Of a DNA stretch of 64,000 nt, positions 33,547 through 44,919 are shown piece by piece (position 1 is the first letter of the stretch; each line of letters begins with the position of its first letter). Where the stretch lies: the sequence record ON529851.1. One strand, 5' to 3'. The notes beneath the pieces were generated by a model. It worked only from the letters and a program-made list of their open reading frames with translations, ran no database searches and was not told the DNA's origin. Both the position numbers and the translations under genes were made by a program.

Positions 33547-36500
33547 ATGGCTCCTGTCCGCACGAAGCGCATCGCGCTCGTCTCTACGCGCATCCCCAAC
33601 TACCCGCACCGCAAGAAGGACGGCGGCGGCTCTGGCGGCGGAATGTCCGGCCCCCAGGTCCATGACGTCGTCTTCGACGGCCCCGCCTCCATTACCGAGG
33701 GCGCCGCGCCCGGCACCGTGGTTGTCGGCGTGTCCACCCTGCCGCCGGAAGCGGAACTGACCCTGGTCAATGACGCCGGCGGGCGCTTCGCCCTCGACGG
33801 GAACGTCCTGGTCGCCGGCGCGACCCCGACCGACTATGAGGCCGCCACCCAGCACACCGTCGTCGTGCGCGGGACCCTGGGCGCCAGCACCCTCGACAAG
33901 CCGCTCGTCGTCTCGGTGGTCAATCTCGTGGAACTGATCGACTTCGATCTGACCGGCCTGACGGTGCGCGAAGACGCCGCCCAGGGCGTGGTCGTCGGCG
34001 CCCTGTCCTCGAACCCGACCGGCGCGGCCTTCACCCTGACCGGCGACGCCGGCGGACGCTTCGCCCTGTCGGGCGCGAATATCGTGCGTGGCGCGACGGC
34101 GCTCGATTATGAAGCCGCCACCAGCCACGACATCACCGTCAGCGCCGCCCTGGGCGGTGAGATCATCAACAAGACCTACACCATCCAGGTCACCGACGTC
34201 GACGAACTGACCAGCTTCACCCTGTCGGCCAGCACCATTGCGGAAAACTCGCCGGCCGGCACCGCTGTGGGCACGCTGTCGTCGGTTCCCGCCGGGGCCT
34301 CTTTCACCCTGGTGAACACTGCCGGAAACCGCTTCGCGCTGACGGGCGGGACCCAGATTGTCGCGGGCGCGGTCGCCACGGACTACGAGGCCGCCACCAG
34401 CCACCAGGTCACGGTCCGCGCGACCCGCCTGGGCGAAACGATCGAGCAGAACTTCACGATCACCGTCTCCAACGTCAATGAACTGACCAACATCACCCTG
34501 AGCGGGACGACGGTCGTGGAGAACACGGGGCCTGGCGTCACCGTCGGAACCCTGGCCTCGGTCCCCGCCGGCGCGTCTTTCGCGCTGACGAACACCGCCG
34601 GCAACCGCTTCGCCGTCTCGGGCGCCAACCTGGTGACGGGTGCGGTGAGCACCAACTACGAAGCCGCGACCAGCCATAGCGTGACGGTCGAGGCGACGCG
34701 CGGCGCCGACGTCATCACCCGCACCTTCACCATCGACGTGACGGACGTCGTCGAGCCGCTGTCCATCGACCTCGCGCCCGCAGCCATCGCTGAGAACTCG
34801 CCCCAGGGCGCCCTGGTCGGCACGCTGACGTCCGAGCCCGCCGGCGCGACCTACACGCTGACGGACTCGGCGGCCAATCGCTTCGCCCTGTCGGGCGACA
34901 CCATCGTCGTCGGGACGGTCCTGACGGACTTCGAGACGGCCGCGAGCCACGCGATCACGGTGGACGCGGAACTGGGCGGCGTGGAGACGTCGCGCACTTT
35001 CACCATCACCGTGACCGATGTCGCCGAACTCACCAACATCGCCCTGTCCAACAGCACCGTGGCGGAAAACATCGCCAGCGGCGCCGTCGTGGGCGCCCTG
35101 ACCTCGACGCCGGGCGGCGCGACCTGGACTCTCGTGGACGGCGCCGGCGGCCGCTTCTCCATCACCGGCAACAACGTCGTGCGCGGCGCGACCGCGCTGG
35201 ACTATGAGGCGGCGACCTCGCACGCCATCACCGTACGCGGCACGCGCGGCGGGGAGACGCTGGAGAAGACCTTCACCATCACGGTCACCAATGTCGTCGA
35301 AATCAGCGACATCACGCTGTCGGCGAACTCGACCCCGGAAAACTCCGTCGCCCCCGCCGTGGTGGGCGCGCTGTCGTCGACGCCGGCGGGCGCCAGCTTC
35401 GTGATGACGAACAACGCCGCCAACCGCTTCGCCCTGTCGGGGAACAACGTCGTGCGCGGCGCCACGGCGCTCGATTACGAGAACGCCACCTCGCACGACA
35501 TCACCATCCGGGGGACCCGCCAAGGCGAGACCTTCGACAAGACGTTCACCATCAACGTCACCAACGTCAACGAGATCACCGACATCAGCCTGTCAGCGAA
35601 CACCATCTCGGAAGCGGCCCCCGCCAACACTGTCGTGGGCGCCCTGTCTTCGACGCCGCCTGGCGCGTCCTTCTCCCTGACGGACACCGCCGGCAACCGC
35701 TTCGCGCTTTCGGGCGGCAACATCGTGCGCGGCGCGACGGCGCTCGATTACGAGGCCGCCGCCAGCCACCAGGTGACGGTCCAGGCCTCGCTCGGCGCGG
35801 ACACCTTCTCGCAGAATTTCACCATCAACGTCACCGACGTCGCCGAGATCACCGCCGTCAACCTGTCAGCGACCTCGCTGGCGGAGAACTCGGCGGCGGG
35901 CACCGTCGTGGGCGCCCTGTCCTCGACCCCGACCGGAGCGACCTTCACGATGACCGGCAACGCCGGCAACCGCTTCGCCCTGTCCGGAAACAACGTCGTC
36001 GCCGGTGCGGTCGCCACCGACTATGAGACCGCCACCAGCCACCAAATCACGATCCGAGGCGCGCGGGGCGGGGAGACCCTGGATCAGACCTTCACGATCA
36101 ACATCACTGACGTGGCGGAACTGACCGGGTTCAGTCTCAACCCGTCGACGATCGCCGAAGCCCATACGACCCCGATCACGACGACCGTCGGCACGCTGAC
36201 GTCCACGCCGCCGGGCGCGACCTACACGACCCCGGCGGAGATCGGGGCCTACTCGGTCGTGGGGTCGTCGTTGAACCGGTCGGGCGATTACAACACCTTC
36301 CCGTCCATCCCCGATTTCCCGCCCTATGTGGGCGGGAAGGCGCCCCTGGCGATCACGGCGAAACTCGGCGGCGTGACCCTGACCCAGGACGTCCTGCTGA
36401 CGATCACGCCGCACCCGAACCACACGCTGACGTTGACCCCGGCCTCCCAAGATGTGGTCGGCGGTACGTCGGCGTCGGTGACGATGAACGCCAACAACGG

Positions 36501-36690
36501 GCCGTGGTCCGTGCAGTGGTATCCCTGGGGCGCGCCGCCGTTCACGGTTGACTCGCCGAATGCGCAGACGACGACGATCAGCCTGAATGCGGGGGCCACC
36601 GGCACCCACACGGGCTATCTGATCTGCGGGATGACGAATGGATCAAACCAGTTCGGCTTCGGGTGGGTCAAGGTCACGCTGACCCGCTAA
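33547..36690 (+). CDS. cadherin-like repeat protein (9 full repeats of about 91 aa plus 1 degenerate)
   Basis: Repeat consensus ..ENS..G.VVG.LSS.P.GA.F.L...AG.RFALSG..V.GA...DYEAATSH.ITV......K.FTI.VTDV.E; short basic N-terminus and Gly linker. Confidence 0.85.
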   Translation: MAPVRTKRIALVSTRIPNYPHRKKDGGGSGGGMSGPQVHDVVFDGPASITEGAAPGTVVVGVSTLPPEAELTLVNDAGGRFALDGNVLVAGATPTDYEAATQHTVVVRGTLGASTLDKPLVVSVVNLVELIDFDLTGLTVREDAAQGVVVGALSSNPTGAAFTLTGDAGGRFALSGANIVRGATALDYEAATSHDITVSAALGGEIINKTYTIQVTDVDELTSFTLSASTIAENSPAGTAVGTLSSVPAGASFTLVNTAGNRFALTGGTQIVAGAVATDYEAATSHQVTVRATRLGETIEQNFTITVSNVNELTNITLSGTTVVENTGPGVTVGTLASVPAGASFALTNTAGNRFAVSGANLVTGAVSTNYEAATSHSVTVEATRGADVITRTFTIDVTDVVEPLSIDLAPAAIAENSPQGALVGTLTSEPAGATYTLTDSAANRFALSGDTIVVGTVLTDFETAASHAITVDAELGGVETSRTFTITVTDVAELTNIALSNSTVAENIASGAVVGALTSTPGGATWTLVDGAGGRFSITGNNVVRGATALDYEAATSHAITVRGTRGGETLEKTFTITVTNVVEISDITLSANSTPENSVAPAVVGALSSTPAGASFVMTNNAANRFALSGNNVVRGATALDYENATSHDITIRGTRQGETFDKTFTINVTNVNEITDISLSANTISEAAPANTVVGALSSTPPGASFSLTDTAGNRFALSGGNIVRGATALDYEAAASHQVTVQASLGADTFSQNFTINVTDVAEITAVNLSATSLAENSAAGTVVGALSSTPTGATFTMTGNAGNRFALSGNNVVAGAVATDYETATSHQITIRGARGGETLDQTFTINITDVAELTGFSLNPSTIAEAHTTPITTTVGTLTSTPPGATYTTPAEIGAYSVVGSSLNRSGDYNTFPSIPDFPPYVGGKAPLAITAKLGGVTLTQDVLLTITPHPNHTLTLTPASQDVVGGTSASVTMNANNGPWSVQWYPWGAPPFTVDSPNAQTTTISLNAGATGTHTGYLICGMTNGSNQFGFGWVKVTLTR

Positions 36691-38406: not shown

Positions 38407-38443
38407 TCCTCTTACACGTCCAGGCTTGAAGGAGCCCCTCTCG

Positions 38444-39571
38444 ATGACTGCATCCAAAGGCTTCGACAAGCCTGTCGCCCAACCTGTGCCCCAGGCCGTC
38501 AGAGACGCCGCCGCTGCGTCGGGCTGGCAAACCGCCGACGCCGCTGCGCCTCGCGCCATGGGCCTCCATGTGGCGCAGGGCCAACCCCCCGCGACGCGTC
38601 CCGCCGGCGTCCCCTCGGGCCGCGCCCTGACCCCGTTCACCCTGCAAGAGGTGGTGGACTACGGCAAGCCTCAGGCGACCGGCGCCGCCACGGTGGCGTC
38701 GAAGATCACCGGCTCGGCGCGGGCCGGCGACATCGACGAGGTCGGCAAGGCCCTGACGGCGCTGCTGACCGGCGCCCAGCAGTATGACCCGTCCAAGCTG
38801 GGCAAGGGCGGCTTCATGGGCTTCTTCAAGCGCAAGAAGCGCGAACTGGAATCCCACTACAAGTCGGTCGACGCCCAGGTGAACACCCTGGCGGCCGACG
38901 TCCAGAAACATATCGGGCATTTCCAGGGCCGAATTGGCGATCTGGAAGCCCTGAAGAAAGAGAACGCCACGCGCCACGCCGAACTCGGCGCGGCGATGGA
39001 GCGCGCCAACGAGCGTATCGCCTGGATGAAGGCCAATCCGCCCGAGGTCGACGCCTCGGACCCGATGTCGGCGGCCAATCTCCAGACCTGGAACAATGTC
39101 ATCGCCTACGCCGAAAAGCGTGTGGACGACCTGCGCCGCGCCCAAGTCCTCTGCGAGATGCAGGCGCCCCAGATCGACATGATGCAGCAGAACGCCGGTA
39201 TGCTGGTGATGAAGTTCGGCGAGGTCCAGACCACGACCCTGCCGCAACTCCAGATGGGCTTCTCGCTCTACATCGCCAACATGGAGGCCCAGAAGGGCGC
39301 CGAGTTCTCCAAGGCGATCGACAACATGAACAACGACCTGATCACCCGGAACTCGGCCCAGTTGGGCACGACGACGGTGGCGGTGCGCCAGCAGATGGCG
39401 CGCTCGTCGGTCGACCTGACGACCCTTCAGACGGTCAAGGACAATCTGTTCAACACCATGGACGAGTGCAAGCGCATCCAGTCCGAACTCTCCACCCGCC
39501 TGCAAAACGAGCGCCCCGCTCTGGAGCAGGCCAGTCAGGACCTCGCCGCGCGACTCGCGTCCGGCGCCTGA
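38444..39571 (+). CDS. telA: TelA-like toxic anion resistance protein
   Basis: All-helical; GGFMGFF..ESHYKSVD.QV..L, KRVDDL..APQI.MMQQN..L..K..TTTLP pattern; context next to ter genes. Confidence 0.7.
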   Translation: MTASKGFDKPVAQPVPQAVRDAAAASGWQTADAAAPRAMGLHVAQGQPPATRPAGVPSGRALTPFTLQEVVDYGKPQATGAATVASKITGSARAGDIDEVGKALTALLTGAQQYDPSKLGKGGFMGFFKRKKRELESHYKSVDAQVNTLAADVQKHIGHFQGRIGDLEALKKENATRHAELGAAMERANERIAWMKANPPEVDASDPMSAANLQTWNNVIAYAEKRVDDLRRAQVLCEMQAPQIDMMQQNAGMLVMKFGEVQTTTLPQLQMGFSLYIANMEAQKGAEFSKAIDNMNNDLITRNSAQLGTTTVAVRQQMARSSVDLTTLQTVKDNLFNTMDECKRIQSELSTRLQNERPALEQASQDLAARLASGA

Positions 39572-39614: not shown

Positions 39615-40379
39615 ATGGCCGTCATCGACCTGGAAAAGAAAGTCGAGAACGTCACGATCTCGCTGGCGAAAGCCGGCATCACCAAGGTGCCGCCGCTGCG
39701 TGTCGCCGCCGTCTATGACGACTCCTATTCGATGAAGCCGCTCTACGCGAACGGCGCCGTCCAGAAGGCCGCAGACCAGGTCCTGGCGGTCGGCATGAAG
39801 TTCGACGACGATGGTCAGGTGGACAGCTTCAAATTCCACAACGAAGCCTATTATGTCGGCACCCAGGACGAAAACCAGTTCGGCACCTTCGTCAAGGAAG
39901 CCATCCTGTCGCGCAACGACCTGTGGGGCGGCACCAGCTACGGCGCTGGTCTGAAGGCCGTCATGGACTTCTTCTTCGGCGCGGGCGTCCGCTCGACCGC
40001 CTTCGTCCCCGGCGCCAAGAAGAAGGGCCTGTTCGGCTTTGGCGGCCAGACCAGGGGCACCTATGAGACCAAGACCTTCAAGAGCGAAGGCACGGACCCG
40101 GTCATGGTCATGTTCTTCACCGACGGCGAACAGACCGACGGCATGGCCGCCGCCCAGATCATCGCAGCGGCCGAGAAGGCCAACCAGCCGATCTACTTCA
40201 ACCTGATCGGCGTGGGCAACGCGACCAACTTCGCCTACCTGAAGAAGCTGGCCGACGACTACGACAACTGCGGGTTTGTCCACCTGAAGGGCTTCGACCT
40301 GACCGACAGCCAAATCTACGACGCCCTGCTGGGCACCGAAGAGGTCGTCGCCTTCCTGCGCAAGCACGGCGCCTCCTAA
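39615..40379 (+). CDS. vWA-domain protein (TerF-associated vWA type)
   Basis: MIDAS-like DDSYSM, KFDDDG, GGTSYG, MFFTDG, FNLIGVG..F.YLKKL.D..DNCGF. Confidence 0.8.
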   Translation: MAVIDLEKKVENVTISLAKAGITKVPPLRVAAVYDDSYSMKPLYANGAVQKAADQVLAVGMKFDDDGQVDSFKFHNEAYYVGTQDENQFGTFVKEAILSRNDLWGGTSYGAGLKAVMDFFFGAGVRSTAFVPGAKKKGLFGFGGQTRGTYETKTFKSEGTDPVMVMFFTDGEQTDGMAAAQIIAAAEKANQPIYFNLIGVGNATNFAYLKKLADDYDNCGFVHLKGFDLTDSQIYDALLGTEEVVAFLRKHGAS

Positions 40380-40451: not shown

Positions 40452-41447
40452 ATGGACATCGGGCTCGGCTACGTAGCCTTGGCGGTCATCGCCCTGGGGC
40501 TGCTCGCCTTTGATCTTTACAACCACCGCAAGCCCGAAGAGGTGTCGATCAAGAGCGCTGCTCTCTGGTCGGGCTTCTACGTCCTGGCGGCCCTGGGCTT
40601 CGCCCTCTACATCAACTTCCAGTATTCGACCGAGTGGGCGCAACTGTTCCTGACCGGCTACGCGCTGGAGAAGGTCCTGGCGGTGGACAACCTGTTCGCC
40701 TTCATGATCATCTTCTCCTACTTCGGCATCGCGTCGAAGTTCCAGCACAACATCCTCTACTGGGGCATCCTGGGCGCCATCATCTTCCGGGGCGTGTTCG
40801 TGGTGCTGGGTACGTCCTTCACGGCCCTGTTCGGCCCCTGGGCGCTGCTGATCTTCGCAGCCATCATCGGCTACACCGCCATCAAGATGCTTCAGGGCGG
40901 CGGCGAGGACGGCGACGAGGCGGTCGACTACGCCGACAAGTGGTATATCAAGGGCGTCAAGCGCTTCCTGCCGGTCACCGAGAAGACCGACGGCGGCAAG
41001 TTCTTCCTGAAGCTGCCGACCAACGCCGGCAAGACGGCCCTGTTCGCCACCCCGATGTTCCTCTGCCTGATCGCCATCGAAGTCACCGACGTCGTCTTCG
41101 CCTTCGACAGCGTCCCGGCCGTGATCGCGGTCACCAAGGAGCCGTTCCTGGTCTATTCGGCCATGATCTTCGCCATCCTCGGCCTGCGTTCGCTCTACTT
41201 CGTGCTGGAAGCGCTGCGTCGCGTCCTGTCGCGTCTGGAGACGGCGGTCATCTTCATCCTGCTCTTCATCGCCGGCAAGCTGACGGTGCAGGCGGGCTCC
41301 ACCTTGGTGCATGACTTCACAGGCGCCATGCAGCCGATCCACATCGATCCGCTGCTCAGCCTCGCCATCGTCATGACCCTGCTGGTCGGCGGCGTGATCT
41401 GGTCGCTGGTCAGCCCCGTCAAGGAAGACGAAGCCGAAGCGGCCTAA
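40452..41447 (+). CDS. terC: TerC/Alx-family membrane protein
   Basis: GYALEKVLAVDNLFAF..F.YF..Q..L..GILGAIIFR, IEVTDVVFAFDSVPAVIAVT..YSAMIFAILGLRSLYF. Confidence 0.92.
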   Translation: MDIGLGYVALAVIALGLLAFDLYNHRKPEEVSIKSAALWSGFYVLAALGFALYINFQYSTEWAQLFLTGYALEKVLAVDNLFAFMIIFSYFGIASKFQHNILYWGILGAIIFRGVFVVLGTSFTALFGPWALLIFAAIIGYTAIKMLQGGGEDGDEAVDYADKWYIKGVKRFLPVTEKTDGGKFFLKLPTNAGKTALFATPMFLCLIAIEVTDVVFAFDSVPAVIAVTKEPFLVYSAMIFAILGLRSLYFVLEALRRVLSRLETAVIFILLFIAGKLTVQAGSTLVHDFTGAMQPIHIDPLLSLAIVMTLLVGGVIWSLVSPVKEDEAEAA

Positions 41448-41522: not shown

Positions 41523-42170
41523 ATGAGCGTTATCGACCTCTCCAAAGGCGGCAACATCAACCTGGCGAAAGACGCCCCCGGCGTCACCCGCTTCGTCATT
41601 GGCCTGGGCTGGAACGCCAACCCGCAGAGCCCGCCGGACCTGGACGCCTCGGTCCTGCCCTGCACCAAGGTCGGCGGCAACCCGGTCCTGCCGGACGACA
41701 AGTCGTTCGTCTTCTACGGCAACCTGAAATCCTCGGACGGGGCCATCATCCACTCGGGTGACAACCTGACCGGCGACGGCGACGGCGACGATGAGCGCAT
41801 CGCCATCGATACCGCCAAGCTGAACCCGGCGATCGACGACATCCTGATCGTGGTGACGATCCACCAGGGCAAGGAACGCGGCCAGAACTTCGGCTTGGTC
41901 CGCAACGCCTACGCCCGCATCTACGACGCCGACAAGCTGGCGGCGGCCGAAGCGGCCAATCCGAACCTGTCGGACAAGGAACTGCACGACCTCGCCCTGG
42001 CGCAGTACGACCTTGAAGAAGACGCCGGCGGCTACACCGCCCTGGTCTTCGGCGAACTCTACTCGAAGGACGGCGACTGGCGCTTCAAGGCGCGCGGCGA
42101 AGGTCGTAACGAATCGCTGGGCGAACTGATCAGCAGCTACCTGCCGGCCGGCGTGTCGGTCTCGGGCTAA
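41523..42170 (+). CDS. terD: TerD-family protein
   Basis: LSKGGNINL..GLGW..DLDAS..FVFYGNLKS.DG.I.HSGDNLTGDGDGDDE..NFG.V.NAY..GELY..G.WRFKA.GEG. Confidence 0.93.
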   Translation: MSVIDLSKGGNINLAKDAPGVTRFVIGLGWNANPQSPPDLDASVLPCTKVGGNPVLPDDKSFVFYGNLKSSDGAIIHSGDNLTGDGDGDDERIAIDTAKLNPAIDDILIVVTIHQGKERGQNFGLVRNAYARIYDADKLAAAEAANPNLSDKELHDLALAQYDLEEDAGGYTALVFGELYSKDGDWRFKARGEGRNESLGELISSYLPAGVSVSG

Positions 42171-42184
42171 GCCTGACGACGAGG

Positions 42185-42211
42185 CCGGGGGACGTTCGCG
42201 TCCCCCGGTTT
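42185..42211 (+). terminator. stem-loop with UUCG loop, possible weak terminator
   Basis: CCGGGGGACG-TTCG-CGTCCCCCGG-TTT. Confidence 0.5.
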
Positions 42212-42222
42212 CGACTACCCTT

Positions 42223-43602
42223 ATGAGACGACCGGACCTTGCGTCCGAAGACCTGGAGGATGTTCCCGTGCCCAAGCCCGCCCCGCCCCCGACTGATATG
42301 GAAGCGCTGGTGCGTCGGCCCAAGAAGGCACAATCGAACGTCCCCTCCCCGATCGACATGGAGGCGCTGGTGCGCCGCCCTCAGAAACCTAATCCTCCTC
42401 CGGCCGCGCAACCGCCCGGCGACGTCGACATGGAAGCGCTGGTGCGTCGCCCGAAGAAGGCTCCCGCAGCGGTCGAGCCGGCCGAAGACCCCAGAATTCA
42501 AGTTTACATTCAAAACCGCGTCAACGGCTGGACGCCTGTCATGGCCGCCGGCGCCGCTGGATATAGCGGAAATCAGGTCCATGCCCTGGAGAGCGATCCT
42601 GACATCCAGGCGAGGATCGCCCAGCGCCTGGCGACGCTGCCGGGGTCGGTCCCCCAGAGCACGGGCAGCGGCTTCTACGGCAAGCCTGCCCCCGCGACCG
42701 ACATGGAGGCCCTGGTGCGCCGGGCCAAGCCGAAGCCGACCTCGGGGTCCTTGACCGACTACACCCTTTACGCCATGGCGCGGAAGAACGGGGCGGACGA
42801 CGGTTTCAAGGGGACGTTTGAAGACTATGTCGCCCAGCACGGCTCCGTGTCGAAGCCGGGGGCGGACATGAACGCCTTGGTGGCGCGCAAGAACACGCCG
42901 GCGCCCGCCCCCAACATGGAGGCCCTGGTCCGCCGCCCGCCGCCGCCCGCCGCGCCGGTGAACGCCAACGCCCGACGCAACCAGCAGGTCAATGCGCTGA
43001 TCGAGCGCGCGCGCCAGGTGGAGCCGAGCGTCGTTGAGGGCATGCGCTTCAACACCCGGCTTCACCGCTTCCTGGACCTGCGACCGACCGCCTGGACGAC
43101 CTGGGGCGAAGACGAAGCCCGCGTCGTGGTGCAGTCCGCCTCGGGTCAGGCGGAGGCGTCTCGACAGCTTTCCCTCGCCAACGCCGTCAAGTGGGCCGCC
43201 GAATGCGAGCAGGCCTACGCCAAGCCGCCGGGGTTCATGGACCGCTTCTCCCAGCAGACACGGCCTGAGTTCTATCGGGTCCGGCTGGAGCAGGCCCGCG
43301 ACATGCTGATCAAGGTCCAGGACGACCTCCAGCAGGTGCAGGACCTGGTGCGCGAGAACCTGGACCGGCTGCGGATCGACGTGGTCGTGCTTCAGGTCGC
43401 CACCGAACAGGTCACCGACGCCTCGGACTCCATCATCGCCACGCGGCGTCTCCAGACCCTGGTCCAGGTGCAGGCGACCGCCGCCATGATCCTCCAGGGC
43501 TGCGAGAGTCTGGCCCAGACCGCCGCCGCCCAGGCGGCCACGGTATCGTCGTTGCTGACGGTGACGATCCCCAACTGGATCATCGCGCAGCAGAATCGTT
43601 GA
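42223..43602 (+). CDS. protein with six DMEALVRR repeats and a diverged TelA-like C-terminal domain
   Basis: Pro-rich N-terminal half with 6 repeats; C-terminus aligns without gaps to part of the upstream TelA. Confidence 0.75.
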   Translation: MRRPDLASEDLEDVPVPKPAPPPTDMEALVRRPKKAQSNVPSPIDMEALVRRPQKPNPPPAAQPPGDVDMEALVRRPKKAPAAVEPAEDPRIQVYIQNRVNGWTPVMAAGAAGYSGNQVHALESDPDIQARIAQRLATLPGSVPQSTGSGFYGKPAPATDMEALVRRAKPKPTSGSLTDYTLYAMARKNGADDGFKGTFEDYVAQHGSVSKPGADMNALVARKNTPAPAPNMEALVRRPPPPAAPVNANARRNQQVNALIERARQVEPSVVEGMRFNTRLHRFLDLRPTAWTTWGEDEARVVVQSASGQAEASRQLSLANAVKWAAECEQAYAKPPGFMDRFSQQTRPEFYRVRLEQARDMLIKVQDDLQQVQDLVRENLDRLRIDVVVLQVATEQVTDASDSIIATRRLQTLVQVQATAAMILQGCESLAQTAAAQAATVSSLLTVTIPNWIIAQQNR

Positions 43603-43680: not shown

Positions 43681-44919
43681 ATGCAAGAGATTAAGGGTTG
43701 GCATGGCGGCAAGATCAAGGCCTTCACCCAGCACCCCGACGGCCGCGAGGTCGCGTTCGAACATGCGGCCCAGGTGCAGGCGTTCAACGCCGCCGCGCTG
43801 CCGTTCATCCATGAGCATGTCGCCATCATGCCGGACGTGCATGCCGGGTATGGCTCCACCGTCGGTTCGGTGATCCCGACCAAGGGCGCCATCATCCCGG
43901 CGGCGGTCGGCGTCGACATCGGCTGCGGCATGATGGCGGTGCGCACCACCCTGACCGGCGACGACCTGCCCGACAGCCTGGAAAAGCTGCGCTCGCTGAT
44001 CGAGCACGCCGTTCCGCACGGCGGACCGGGCAAGCACGGTTCCTGGCTGGAGCCGGGGCGCCACGGCATCCCCAACGCGATCATGAACGCCTGGGTCAAG
44101 ACGGGCATGGAAGCGCGCTTCAAGGCCCTGTGCGACAAGCACCCGATCATCGAGAAGTCCTTCCACGTCGTCCAACTGGGCTCGCTCGGCGGCGGCAACC
44201 ACTTCATCGAAGTGTGCCTGGACAAGGACAACCGCGTCTGGGTCATGCTCCACTCGGGCTCTCGCGGCGTCGGCAACGTGATCGGCCGCTACTTCACCGA
44301 GAAGGCGAAGGAGGCGCTGAACAAGCGCGGCGGTTACATCCCGCAGGACAAGGACCTGGCCTGGTTCGAAGAGGGTGAACAACTCTTCGACGACTATGTC
44401 GAGGCGGTCGGCTGGGGGCAGGACTTCGCGCGCCTGAACCGCGAGATGATGATGGTCAACGTCCTGCGCGTCATGCGCACGGTGTTGCCGCCCTTCAAGA
44501 CGGACAAGGAGGCGGTCAACTGCCACCACAACTACGTCACGAAGGAGCATCACTTCGGGGCGGACGTCTTCGTGACCCGCAAGGGCGCGGTGTCGGCCAA
44601 GGACGGCGAACTGGGCATCATTCCCGGCTCCATGGGCGCGCGGTCCTACATCGTGCGCGGCAAGGGCAACCCGGATTCGTTCTGCTCGTGTTCGCACGGG
44701 GCGGGACGGACCATGAGCCGCACCAAGGCCAAGGCCGAGTTCACGGTCGAGGACATGGTCAAGGCCACCGAAGGCGTCGAGTGCCGCAAGGACGCCGGCG
44801 TGATTGATGAAATTCCGATGGCTTACAAGGACATCGACACCGTCATCGACATCCAGGTCGCCTCCGGGCAGATCGAGGTCGTGGCGATCCTGAAACAAGT
44901 CTTGTGCGTGAAGGGCTAA
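43681..44919 (+). CDS. rtcB: RtcB RNA ligase
   Basis: MPDVHAG.G..VG..GVDIGCGM, LGSLGGGNHFIE, HSGSRG.G, NCHHNY, RKGA, IIPGSMG, SCSHGAGR, DEIP.AYK. Confidence 0.96.
   Translation: MQEIKGWHGGKIKAFTQHPDGREVAFEHAAQVQAFNAAALPFIHEHVAIMPDVHAGYGSTVGSVIPTKGAIIPAAVGVDIGCGMMAVRTTLTGDDLPDSLEKLRSLIEHAVPHGGPGKHGSWLEPGRHGIPNAIMNAWVKTGMEARFKALCDKHPIIEKSFHVVQLGSLGGGNHFIEVCLDKDNRVWVMLHSGSRGVGNVIGRYFTEKAKEALNKRGGYIPQDKDLAWFEEGEQLFDDYVEAVGWGQDFARLNREMMMVNVLRVMRTVLPPFKTDKEAVNCHHNYVTKEHHFGADVFVTRKGAVSAKDGELGIIPGSMGARSYIVRGKGNPDSFCSCSHGAGRTMSRTKAKAEFTVEDMVKATEGVECRKDAGVIDEIPMAYKDIDTVIDIQVASGQIEVVAILKQVLCVKG

Follow-up and report, generated by a model that had tools for sequence, protein, structure and literature searches.

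The gene encoded directly downstream of TerD in Brevundimonas phage vB_BpoS-Marchewka (ON529851.1; 348 kb, Dolichocephalovirinae) specifies a remote homolog of TelA with a long, Pro-rich N-terminal arm on which a short motif, DMEALVRR, is repeated. The gene, here called X, was analyzed within a stretch of 64,000 nucleotides (nt) of that genome (the window). We lean, with modest confidence, toward the reading that X is a divergent, C-terminally truncated TelA paralog that forms the fifth component of the phage Ter cassette and presents a multivalent docking strip, with TerD as the best candidate partner. Bacteria, plasmids, and large phages commonly carry Ter/TelA systems, long regarded as enigmatic. 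X is annotated as hypothetical in every record examined (MARCHEWKA_04360, "hypothetical protein," in GenBank); it had previously gone unnoticed as a component of the Ter cassette, and the family to which it belongs was undescribed. We regard X as a truncated, newly recognized offshoot of the TelA superfamily that bears a multivalent short-linear-motif arm and probably acts as a scaffold or adaptor.

The gene and its TelA-like domain

The maximal open reading frame (ORF) of X extends from an ATG at 42223 to 43602 and encodes 459 amino acids (aa), as given in a preliminary description of the window; residues are numbered on this ORF throughout, and all window coordinates refer to the + strand. 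The only correction concerns the start site. A GGAGG sequence (42254-42258) lies 9 nt 5′ of a GTG codon at 42268, no comparable ribosome-site-like sequence was found 5′ of the ATG at 42223, and X orthologs open with M-x-KPAPPP-x-DMEALVRR. Because of the upstream GGAGG and the ortholog N-termini, the likely coding sequence is 42268-43602 (444 aa), as in the GenBank entry. X was recovered from the Marchewka genome by tblastn with 100% identity.

The C-terminal ~210 aa of X are homologous to the TelA core (residues ~64-281). The domain (aa 249-459; 42967-43599), identified using AlphaFold2 (AF2), hhalign, and Foldseek, is all-helical, with a predicted local distance difference test (pLDDT) score of 90.3 when modeled alone and 96-98 in the full-length model. 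Alignment of a deep profile of 111 X domains with one of 37 phage-type TelAs gave an hhalign probability of 93.6% (E = 2.1e-7, score 54.6) over 178 co-linear columns, pairing X domain residues 31-210 (X aa ~279-458) with TelA residues 64-281. With the setting -M 50 the probability was 91.9%, and E ranged from 2e-7 to 7e-7 over both settings, whereas the controls (one reversed-TelA, one reversed-family, and 22 block-shuffled profiles) scored 17-24 with probabilities ≤2.5%. The same alignment matched the conserved loop PPGFMDRF of X (43225-43248) to KGGFMGFF of TelA, and TVTIP, from the C-terminal TVTIPNW of X (43558-43578), to TTTLP. The loop pair and a 43-residue ungapped match to TelA with nine identities had both been pointed out in the preliminary description; each is present in the sequence and was reproduced by profile-profile alignment.

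The hidden TelA paralog proposed there was thus recovered with deep profiles only, and a number of results weigh against it. BLASTP found no match between X and the window's canonical TelA, which itself scores 166 bits against the Pfam TelA model (PF05816); that model matched neither X at E ≤ 1 nor any of 21 X relatives at E ≤ 10. A shallow hhalign comparison (21 X vs. five TelA sequences) returned the local segment noted earlier with a probability of just 0.76%. When the domain model was compared by Foldseek with the Swiss-Prot portion of the AlphaFold database (AFDB), a check suggested in the preliminary description, TelA-family proteins (staphylococcal TelA-like, KlaA, and YaaN) made up 14 of the top 16 matches, but these matches were weak (E = 0.03-0.08; template modeling (TM) score 0.5-0.69 by query and 0.24-0.39 by hit; root-mean-square deviation 8-14 Å). 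The homology call depends on deep hhalign, because the Pfam, shallow hhalign, and Foldseek statistics are weak or null.

A different explanation is that the C-terminal domain of X is a generic long helical bundle, e.g., a phasin-like one, and that its match to TelA is coiled-coil or compositional noise. The failures of BLASTP, Pfam, and shallow hhalign would fit such a bundle, as would the ranking of AFDB fold clusters, where the best three matches were unnamed or annotated as "phasin family" (TM up to 0.85, 18-22% identity) and TelA entries appeared at ranks 18 and 23. Similarly, searches of the PDB, which contains no TelA structure, by sequence profile and Foldseek found only designed bundles, ClyA, and the like. 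We nevertheless consider this explanation very unlikely. Noise does not readily account for a deep hhalign score of 54.6 against 17-24 for reversed or shuffled controls, nor for co-linear columns that match the two most conserved non-helical motifs; TelA leads the Swiss-Prot fold ranking, X is encoded in a cassette with TelA, and an N-terminal motif (described below) is common to both families. The top AFDB-cluster matches are themselves probably cellular members of the X family.

X is therefore best described as a remote TelA homolog outside the Pfam family boundary, one that fails that family's own threshold. Like TelA/KlaA/YaaN proteins (PF05816), it has a G-F-x-x-[FL] loop and a T-[IL]-P motif, is all-helical with very long helices, and is encoded within a Ter cassette alongside TelA. 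Unlike them, X falls short of the complete TelA architecture, whose helical region spans ~330 aa and includes the C-terminal third: the alignment stops at residue 281 of the 381 of TelA, and X has no counterpart of either the TelA segment at ~180-225 (~40 residues) or TelA's last ~100 residues.

Repeated motifs on a disordered arm

The N-terminal ~230 aa of X constitute a Pro-rich, largely disordered arm in which 8-residue motifs are conserved like the folded domain. All six motifs that the preliminary description had placed on a Pro-rich tether were located in the ORF. Four are identical copies of DMEALVRR (aa 25-32, 42295-42318; aa 45-52, 42355-42378; aa 69-76, 42427-42450; and aa 160-167, 42700-42723), the fifth is a degenerate DMNALVAR (aa 215-222, 42865-42888), and the sixth, NMEALVRR (aa 231-238, 42913-42936), adjoins the folded domain and has a pLDDT of ~77 in the full-length AF2 model. 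Six-frame translation of the whole window revealed this motif, hereafter type 1, in no other real ORF. In the full-length model the arm has a pLDDT of 50-70, with short helices at some motifs, and its linkers (motifs and inserts excluded) are 33% Pro and 16% Ala. Identity to orthologs is 62-88% in motif residues, 24-66% in linkers, and 63-99% in the folded C-terminal domain, and 48 type-1 motifs were observed in the N-terminal arms of 111 family members, as compared to 0.0 expected from composition-preserving shuffles. The arm thus combines the disorder, the conservation above flanking sequence, and the above-chance repetition that are expected of a short-linear-motif array. With motifs conserved, linkers drifting, and the arm disordered, the pattern is that of short linear motifs borne by a disordered tether.

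The region is rich in Pro and Ala and contains short CCG-type tandem repeats, and one might accordingly suppose that slippage during replication of a low-complexity spacer produced the motifs neutrally and that they have no specific binder. This is exceedingly improbable. Tandem Repeats Finder detected no motif-length tandem array in X; the motifs are irregularly spaced (60, 72, 273, 165, and 48 nt); and copies 1-4 encode the same peptide with codons that differ at synonymous third positions only, a combination that fits selection on the peptide rather than recent slippage. The far higher conservation of motifs than of linkers also argues against neutrality.

The number of type-1 motifs varies from three to six copies among relatives, a variation that the preliminary description had put forward as worth checking. 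The motif is confined to nine 90%-identity clusters, which comprise Brevundimonas phages and metagenomic relatives, and no motif array was found outside X orthologs by tblastn of 50,697 phage genomes or by a word search of 5.8 billion protein clusters. Neither the X domain nor the motif array was seen fused to a known domain. Restriction to one phage clade and one host genus is what would be expected of a host-specific adaptation, and the DMEALVRR array could conceivably be a high-avidity decoy or tether for a host protein, e.g., a mimic of the FtsZ C-terminal peptide that binds FtsA or another FtsZ anchor. In alphaproteobacterial FtsZ, a long disordered linker leads to the terminal sequence [LI]-[ED]-I-P-A-F-L-R-R-Q-A-N (as read in 120 alphaproteobacterial loci, which included no Brevundimonas or Caulobacter FtsZ), and the peptide and the motif share the pattern acidic-hydrophobic-x-A-hydrophobic-hydrophobic-R-R. 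FtsZ and X resemble each other further in design: in each, a peptide that is short and amphipathic and has a basic end is carried on a long, disordered, Pro-rich linker and presented multivalently to membrane-proximal partners; the two are not homologous, however, and multivalency is achieved in FtsZ through polymerization and in X within one chain. A matrix built from 47 distinct type-1 instances scored EIPAFLRR at -10.6 and DIPAFLRR at -2.1, as compared to 27 for the motif itself, and between 986 and 12,501 of 518,172 8-mers from alphaproteobacterial ORFs (0.2%-2.4%) scored at least as well as these peptides. By the motif matrix, then, the resemblance is not distinctive, and FtsZ C-terminal-peptide mimicry is not supported. 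A single type-1-like motif that is already present in relatives infecting other hosts also counts against a host target, and we regard a host decoy or tether as quite unlikely.

The preliminary description had not recognized the architecture of X. An exhaustive hidden Markov model search showed that X in fact belongs to a family of at least 103 clusters at 50% identity (E < 1e-3), in which the domain is always C-terminal and most members carry another repeated motif; no model of the X domain exists in Pfam, NCBIfam, or PHROGs. The N-terminal arms of the family range from about 0 to 285 aa. In place of DMEALVRR, most contain a repeated type-2 motif, proline-basic-x-L-x-[FLI] (e.g., PKPLNIP, PRGLNF, PKALDF), the strict form of which occurs 100 times in 8,682 arm residues as compared to 2.3 times in shuffles, with two to five type-2 copies per X. 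Phage TelAs carry a single type-2 copy at their N-terminus, M-x-E-P-[KR]-G-L-x-[FL]-G, which runs into a linker rich in Pro and Ala; the strict motif opens 22 of 35 phage TelAs, and looser forms occur in several more. To our knowledge, this TelA motif has not been described. A basic-x-L-x-F peptide at the N-terminus, with a Pro/Ala-rich linker behind it, is therefore present in both families, which is further evidence of common descent and suggests a shared receptor for TelA and X. They differ in that X has an arm of 70-280 aa with two to six motif copies, whereas TelA has one copy, and in that the X of Marchewka bears a different, helix-prone motif and a terminase-like insert in its arm.

Type-1 and type-2 motifs are not mutually exclusive. 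Family members P0008 and P0018 carry both, and several type-2 X proteins, in relatives on other hosts, have one type-1-like element (P-E-D-L-L-x-R-L-R-P) beside the domain; type 1 consequently looks like the amplification of a pre-existing site. In all four type-1-only genomes with a readable TelA (Marchewka, Domovoi, Kikimora, and metagenomic contig L136), the N-terminal motif of TelA is degenerate, with termini such as MTASKGFDKP (window TelA, 38444-38480), MSSSKGFNKP, and MSSSPMFAKT. We infer that the Brevundimonas-phage clade replaced basic-x-L-x-F by D-M-E-A-L-V-R-R.

Other elements were also observed in the arms of the family. Five members (P0011, P0018, P0024, P0025, and P0027) have in common, N-terminal to the motifs, what looks like a small folded element (~40 aa; e.g., "...GVRVV.IE......LEGGRF.R..R.E..."), and shorter-armed members contain a conserved "...H.I.G.IG.V..." element. 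No Pfam domain was found in the arms of the five long-armed members that were scanned. In member P0029 (211 aa, nominally without an arm; L010:6671-7003), the gene call probably starts too late, as the in-frame upstream sequence MTEPKPLAIPD contains a type-2 motif; some "armless" family members may thus be mis-called.

The arm of the Marchewka protein is interrupted by two helical inserts. The first (aa ~88-140; 42484-42642) had been likened, weakly, to the helix-turn-helix (HTH) of small terminase subunits. Three independent searches point the same way, each weakly, and the resemblance is probably real: the insert matched PHROG 11494 (E = 3e-4); its top three PDB sequence matches were terminase small-subunit DNA-binding domains (4zc3, 2cmp, and 3zqp; weak, E = 0.11-0.76); and 67 of 100 matches by ESM Atlas features were in Terminase_2 sets (score 0.82). 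No Pfam match was obtained at E ≤ 1. AF2 predicted four helices (pLDDT 64-78). The ~50-aa insert aligns to the N-terminal HTH of small terminase subunits (Terminase_2) and is predicted to be helical, but X lacks their oligomerization core, and its HTH-like module is set in an arm that is disordered and belongs to a TelA-like protein. Only the five closest phages, Marchewka, Bambus, Domovoi, Papperlapapp, and Kabachok, have the insert; it is absent from P0003-P0010. The second insert (aa ~175-208; 42745-42846) consists of two helices predicted by AF2 (177-188 and 199-206; pLDDT 79-84) and is partly common to P0003 and P0005.

The Ter cassette and the proposed partner of the motifs

X is part of a co-directional block of genes encoding a canonical TelA (38444-39571; Pfam TelA, E = 1.3e-48; maximal ORF from a TTG at 38426), a vWA-TerF-like protein (39615-40379; PF10138, E = 6.9e-28), a TerC-type membrane protein (40452-41447; Pfam TerC, E = 1.4e-42), TerD (41523-42170; Pfam TerD, E = 6.6e-56), X itself, and RtcB (43681-44919; Pfam, E = 6e-124). 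Gene neighborhoods were read in the window, Domovoi, Kikimora, CcrColossus, CcrSC, and ten metagenomic contigs (L006-L011, L132-L137), including a T4-like contig; TerD was immediately upstream of X in 14 of 14 contexts examined. The full order TelA-vWA-TerC/DUF475-TerD-X was found in the window and in L002-L006, L010, L132, L133, L135, and L136. The cassette with X is carried by Caulobacter and Brevundimonas jumbo phages and by other tailed phages. An abbreviated Ter operon of Caulobacter jumbo phages, consisting of TerD, TerC, TerF-vWA, and TelA, was described by Iyer et al. (2021; PMC7824862), who proposed that the cassette forms sub-membrane structures and alters the host membrane, leading to superinfection exclusion or stress tolerance. 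Their operon corresponds to the cassette of X and likewise comes from the Dolichocephalovirinae, but it has four components and the gene downstream of TerD goes unmentioned.

The membrane-protein slot of the cassette is occupied by a canonical TerC (PF03741, E ~1e-42) in the three cultured Brevundimonas phages Marchewka, Domovoi, and Kikimora, and by a protein of the DUF475 type (PF04332, E = 1e-87 to 1e-96) in CcrColossus, CcrSC, and every metagenomic relative (L004:3708-4739, L132:4149-5186, and L136:3964-5034 were compared with window 40452-41447). This is a non-orthologous replacement within the phage Ter cassette. Coupling of the motif switch to this swap was considered and is not supported, as L134 and L136 pair a type-1-only X with DUF475.

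Three further features of these loci were recorded. L136 has an extra 229-aa gene without a Pfam match between the DUF475 gene and TerD (L136:5094-5783). The RtcB of L134 (L134:2208-4355) is 715 aa long, as compared to 404-412 aa in the window and other relatives, which suggests an intein or a fused domain. Upstream of the cassette, the window contains a 1047-aa ORF (33547-36690, + strand) with approximately ten tandem repeats of ~95 aa and a core like "...NRFALSG.N.V.GA.ATDYEAATSH.ITV...", a pattern that would suit Ig- or cadherin-like proteins of the surface or fibers.

Between the TerD stop codon and X lies a GC-rich stem-loop followed by TTT (42180-42213), identified by its folding energy (ΔG = -30.9 kcal/mol, z = -4.2, with none of 200 shuffles as stable). 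Kikimora, L134, and L136 have counterparts of the hairpin in which the stem is maintained by different sequences. The hairpin is probably a terminator or attenuator; a scan for promoter and terminator consensus sequences found nothing above chance.

Taken as a whole, these observations can be accommodated if X is a docking subunit of the Ter module. The TelA-like domain would place X with TelA in a sub-membrane assembly, and the arm would act as a multivalent docking strip, with one partner molecule bound per motif. TerD is the leading candidate for that partner because its gene is always directly upstream of X, and attenuation of read-through at the hairpin could cause TerD to be made in excess over the six-site scaffold. 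The recruitment of TerD, vWA, or a host protein to a TelA heteropolymer, put forward in the preliminary description, likewise stands as a hypothesis. Several points count against this picture. TerD is singled out only by gene adjacency, and an equally good reading of the conserved hairpin is that X and the Ter genes are transcribed separately. AF2 docks motifs 1-5 on nothing in cis. In a receptor-footprint scan, which counted columns that are conserved among type-2 genomes and have switched in those with type 1, TerD was nearly devoid of clade-specific change (1 of 43 conserved columns switched), which is less of a trace than one might expect from a new TerD-motif interface. The corresponding counts were 3 of 86 for TelA, 7 of 67 for vWA, and 94 of 140 for the membrane protein, the last because of the TerC/DUF475 replacement described above. 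No clear motif receptor emerged from co-variation of TerD, vWA, TelA, and TerC, the few changes in TerD, vWA, and TelA being confounded by phylogeny.

The motifs might instead be self-assembly hooks, in that the N-terminal peptides of TelA and X dock on the TelA-like domain of a neighbor and X cross-links or nucleates a TelA/X lattice under the membrane. Such an arrangement would fit the presence of one type-2 motif at the extreme N-terminus of phage TelAs and of two to five in X. It would also fit the decay of the TelA motif in those genomes that have lost type-2 motifs from X (Marchewka, Domovoi, Kikimora, and L136), whichever membrane protein is present, and the replacement, again in the type-1-only clade, of the segment that precedes helix 1 of the X domain (GGDPRAP). 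On the other hand, the co-variation of motif and TelA amounts to a single evolutionary event, and in the full-length AF2 model motifs 1-5 are positioned at low confidence and are not docked on the C-terminal domain of the same chain. In addition, on contig L007 the only neighbors of X are HAD, phosphoribosyltransferase (PRTase), and TerD, with no TelA within the 11-kb contig. We judge self-assembly to be unlikely, and retain as the favored reading that of a docking subunit, with TerD as the best candidate partner.

A bolder version of the docking reading, which we consider speculative and rather doubtful, makes X the hub of a phage-built sub-membrane Ter assembly with a two-class peptide code: basic-x-L-x-F, common to the TelA and X N-termini, and D-M-x-A-L-V-x-R, amplified in Brevundimonas phages. 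The number of motifs on an arm would set the number of TerD (or other) subunits bound per TelA-like scaffold, and the HTH-like insert might couple the assembly to DNA. If true, it would provide the first defined protein-protein wiring diagram for Ter/TelA systems. X defines an unannotated family of at least 103 sequence clusters, so that the "hypothetical protein" recurrently found beside TerD can now be named, and, as a conserved fifth component of the cassette, it would lead to concrete hypotheses on how the parts of Ter systems connect.

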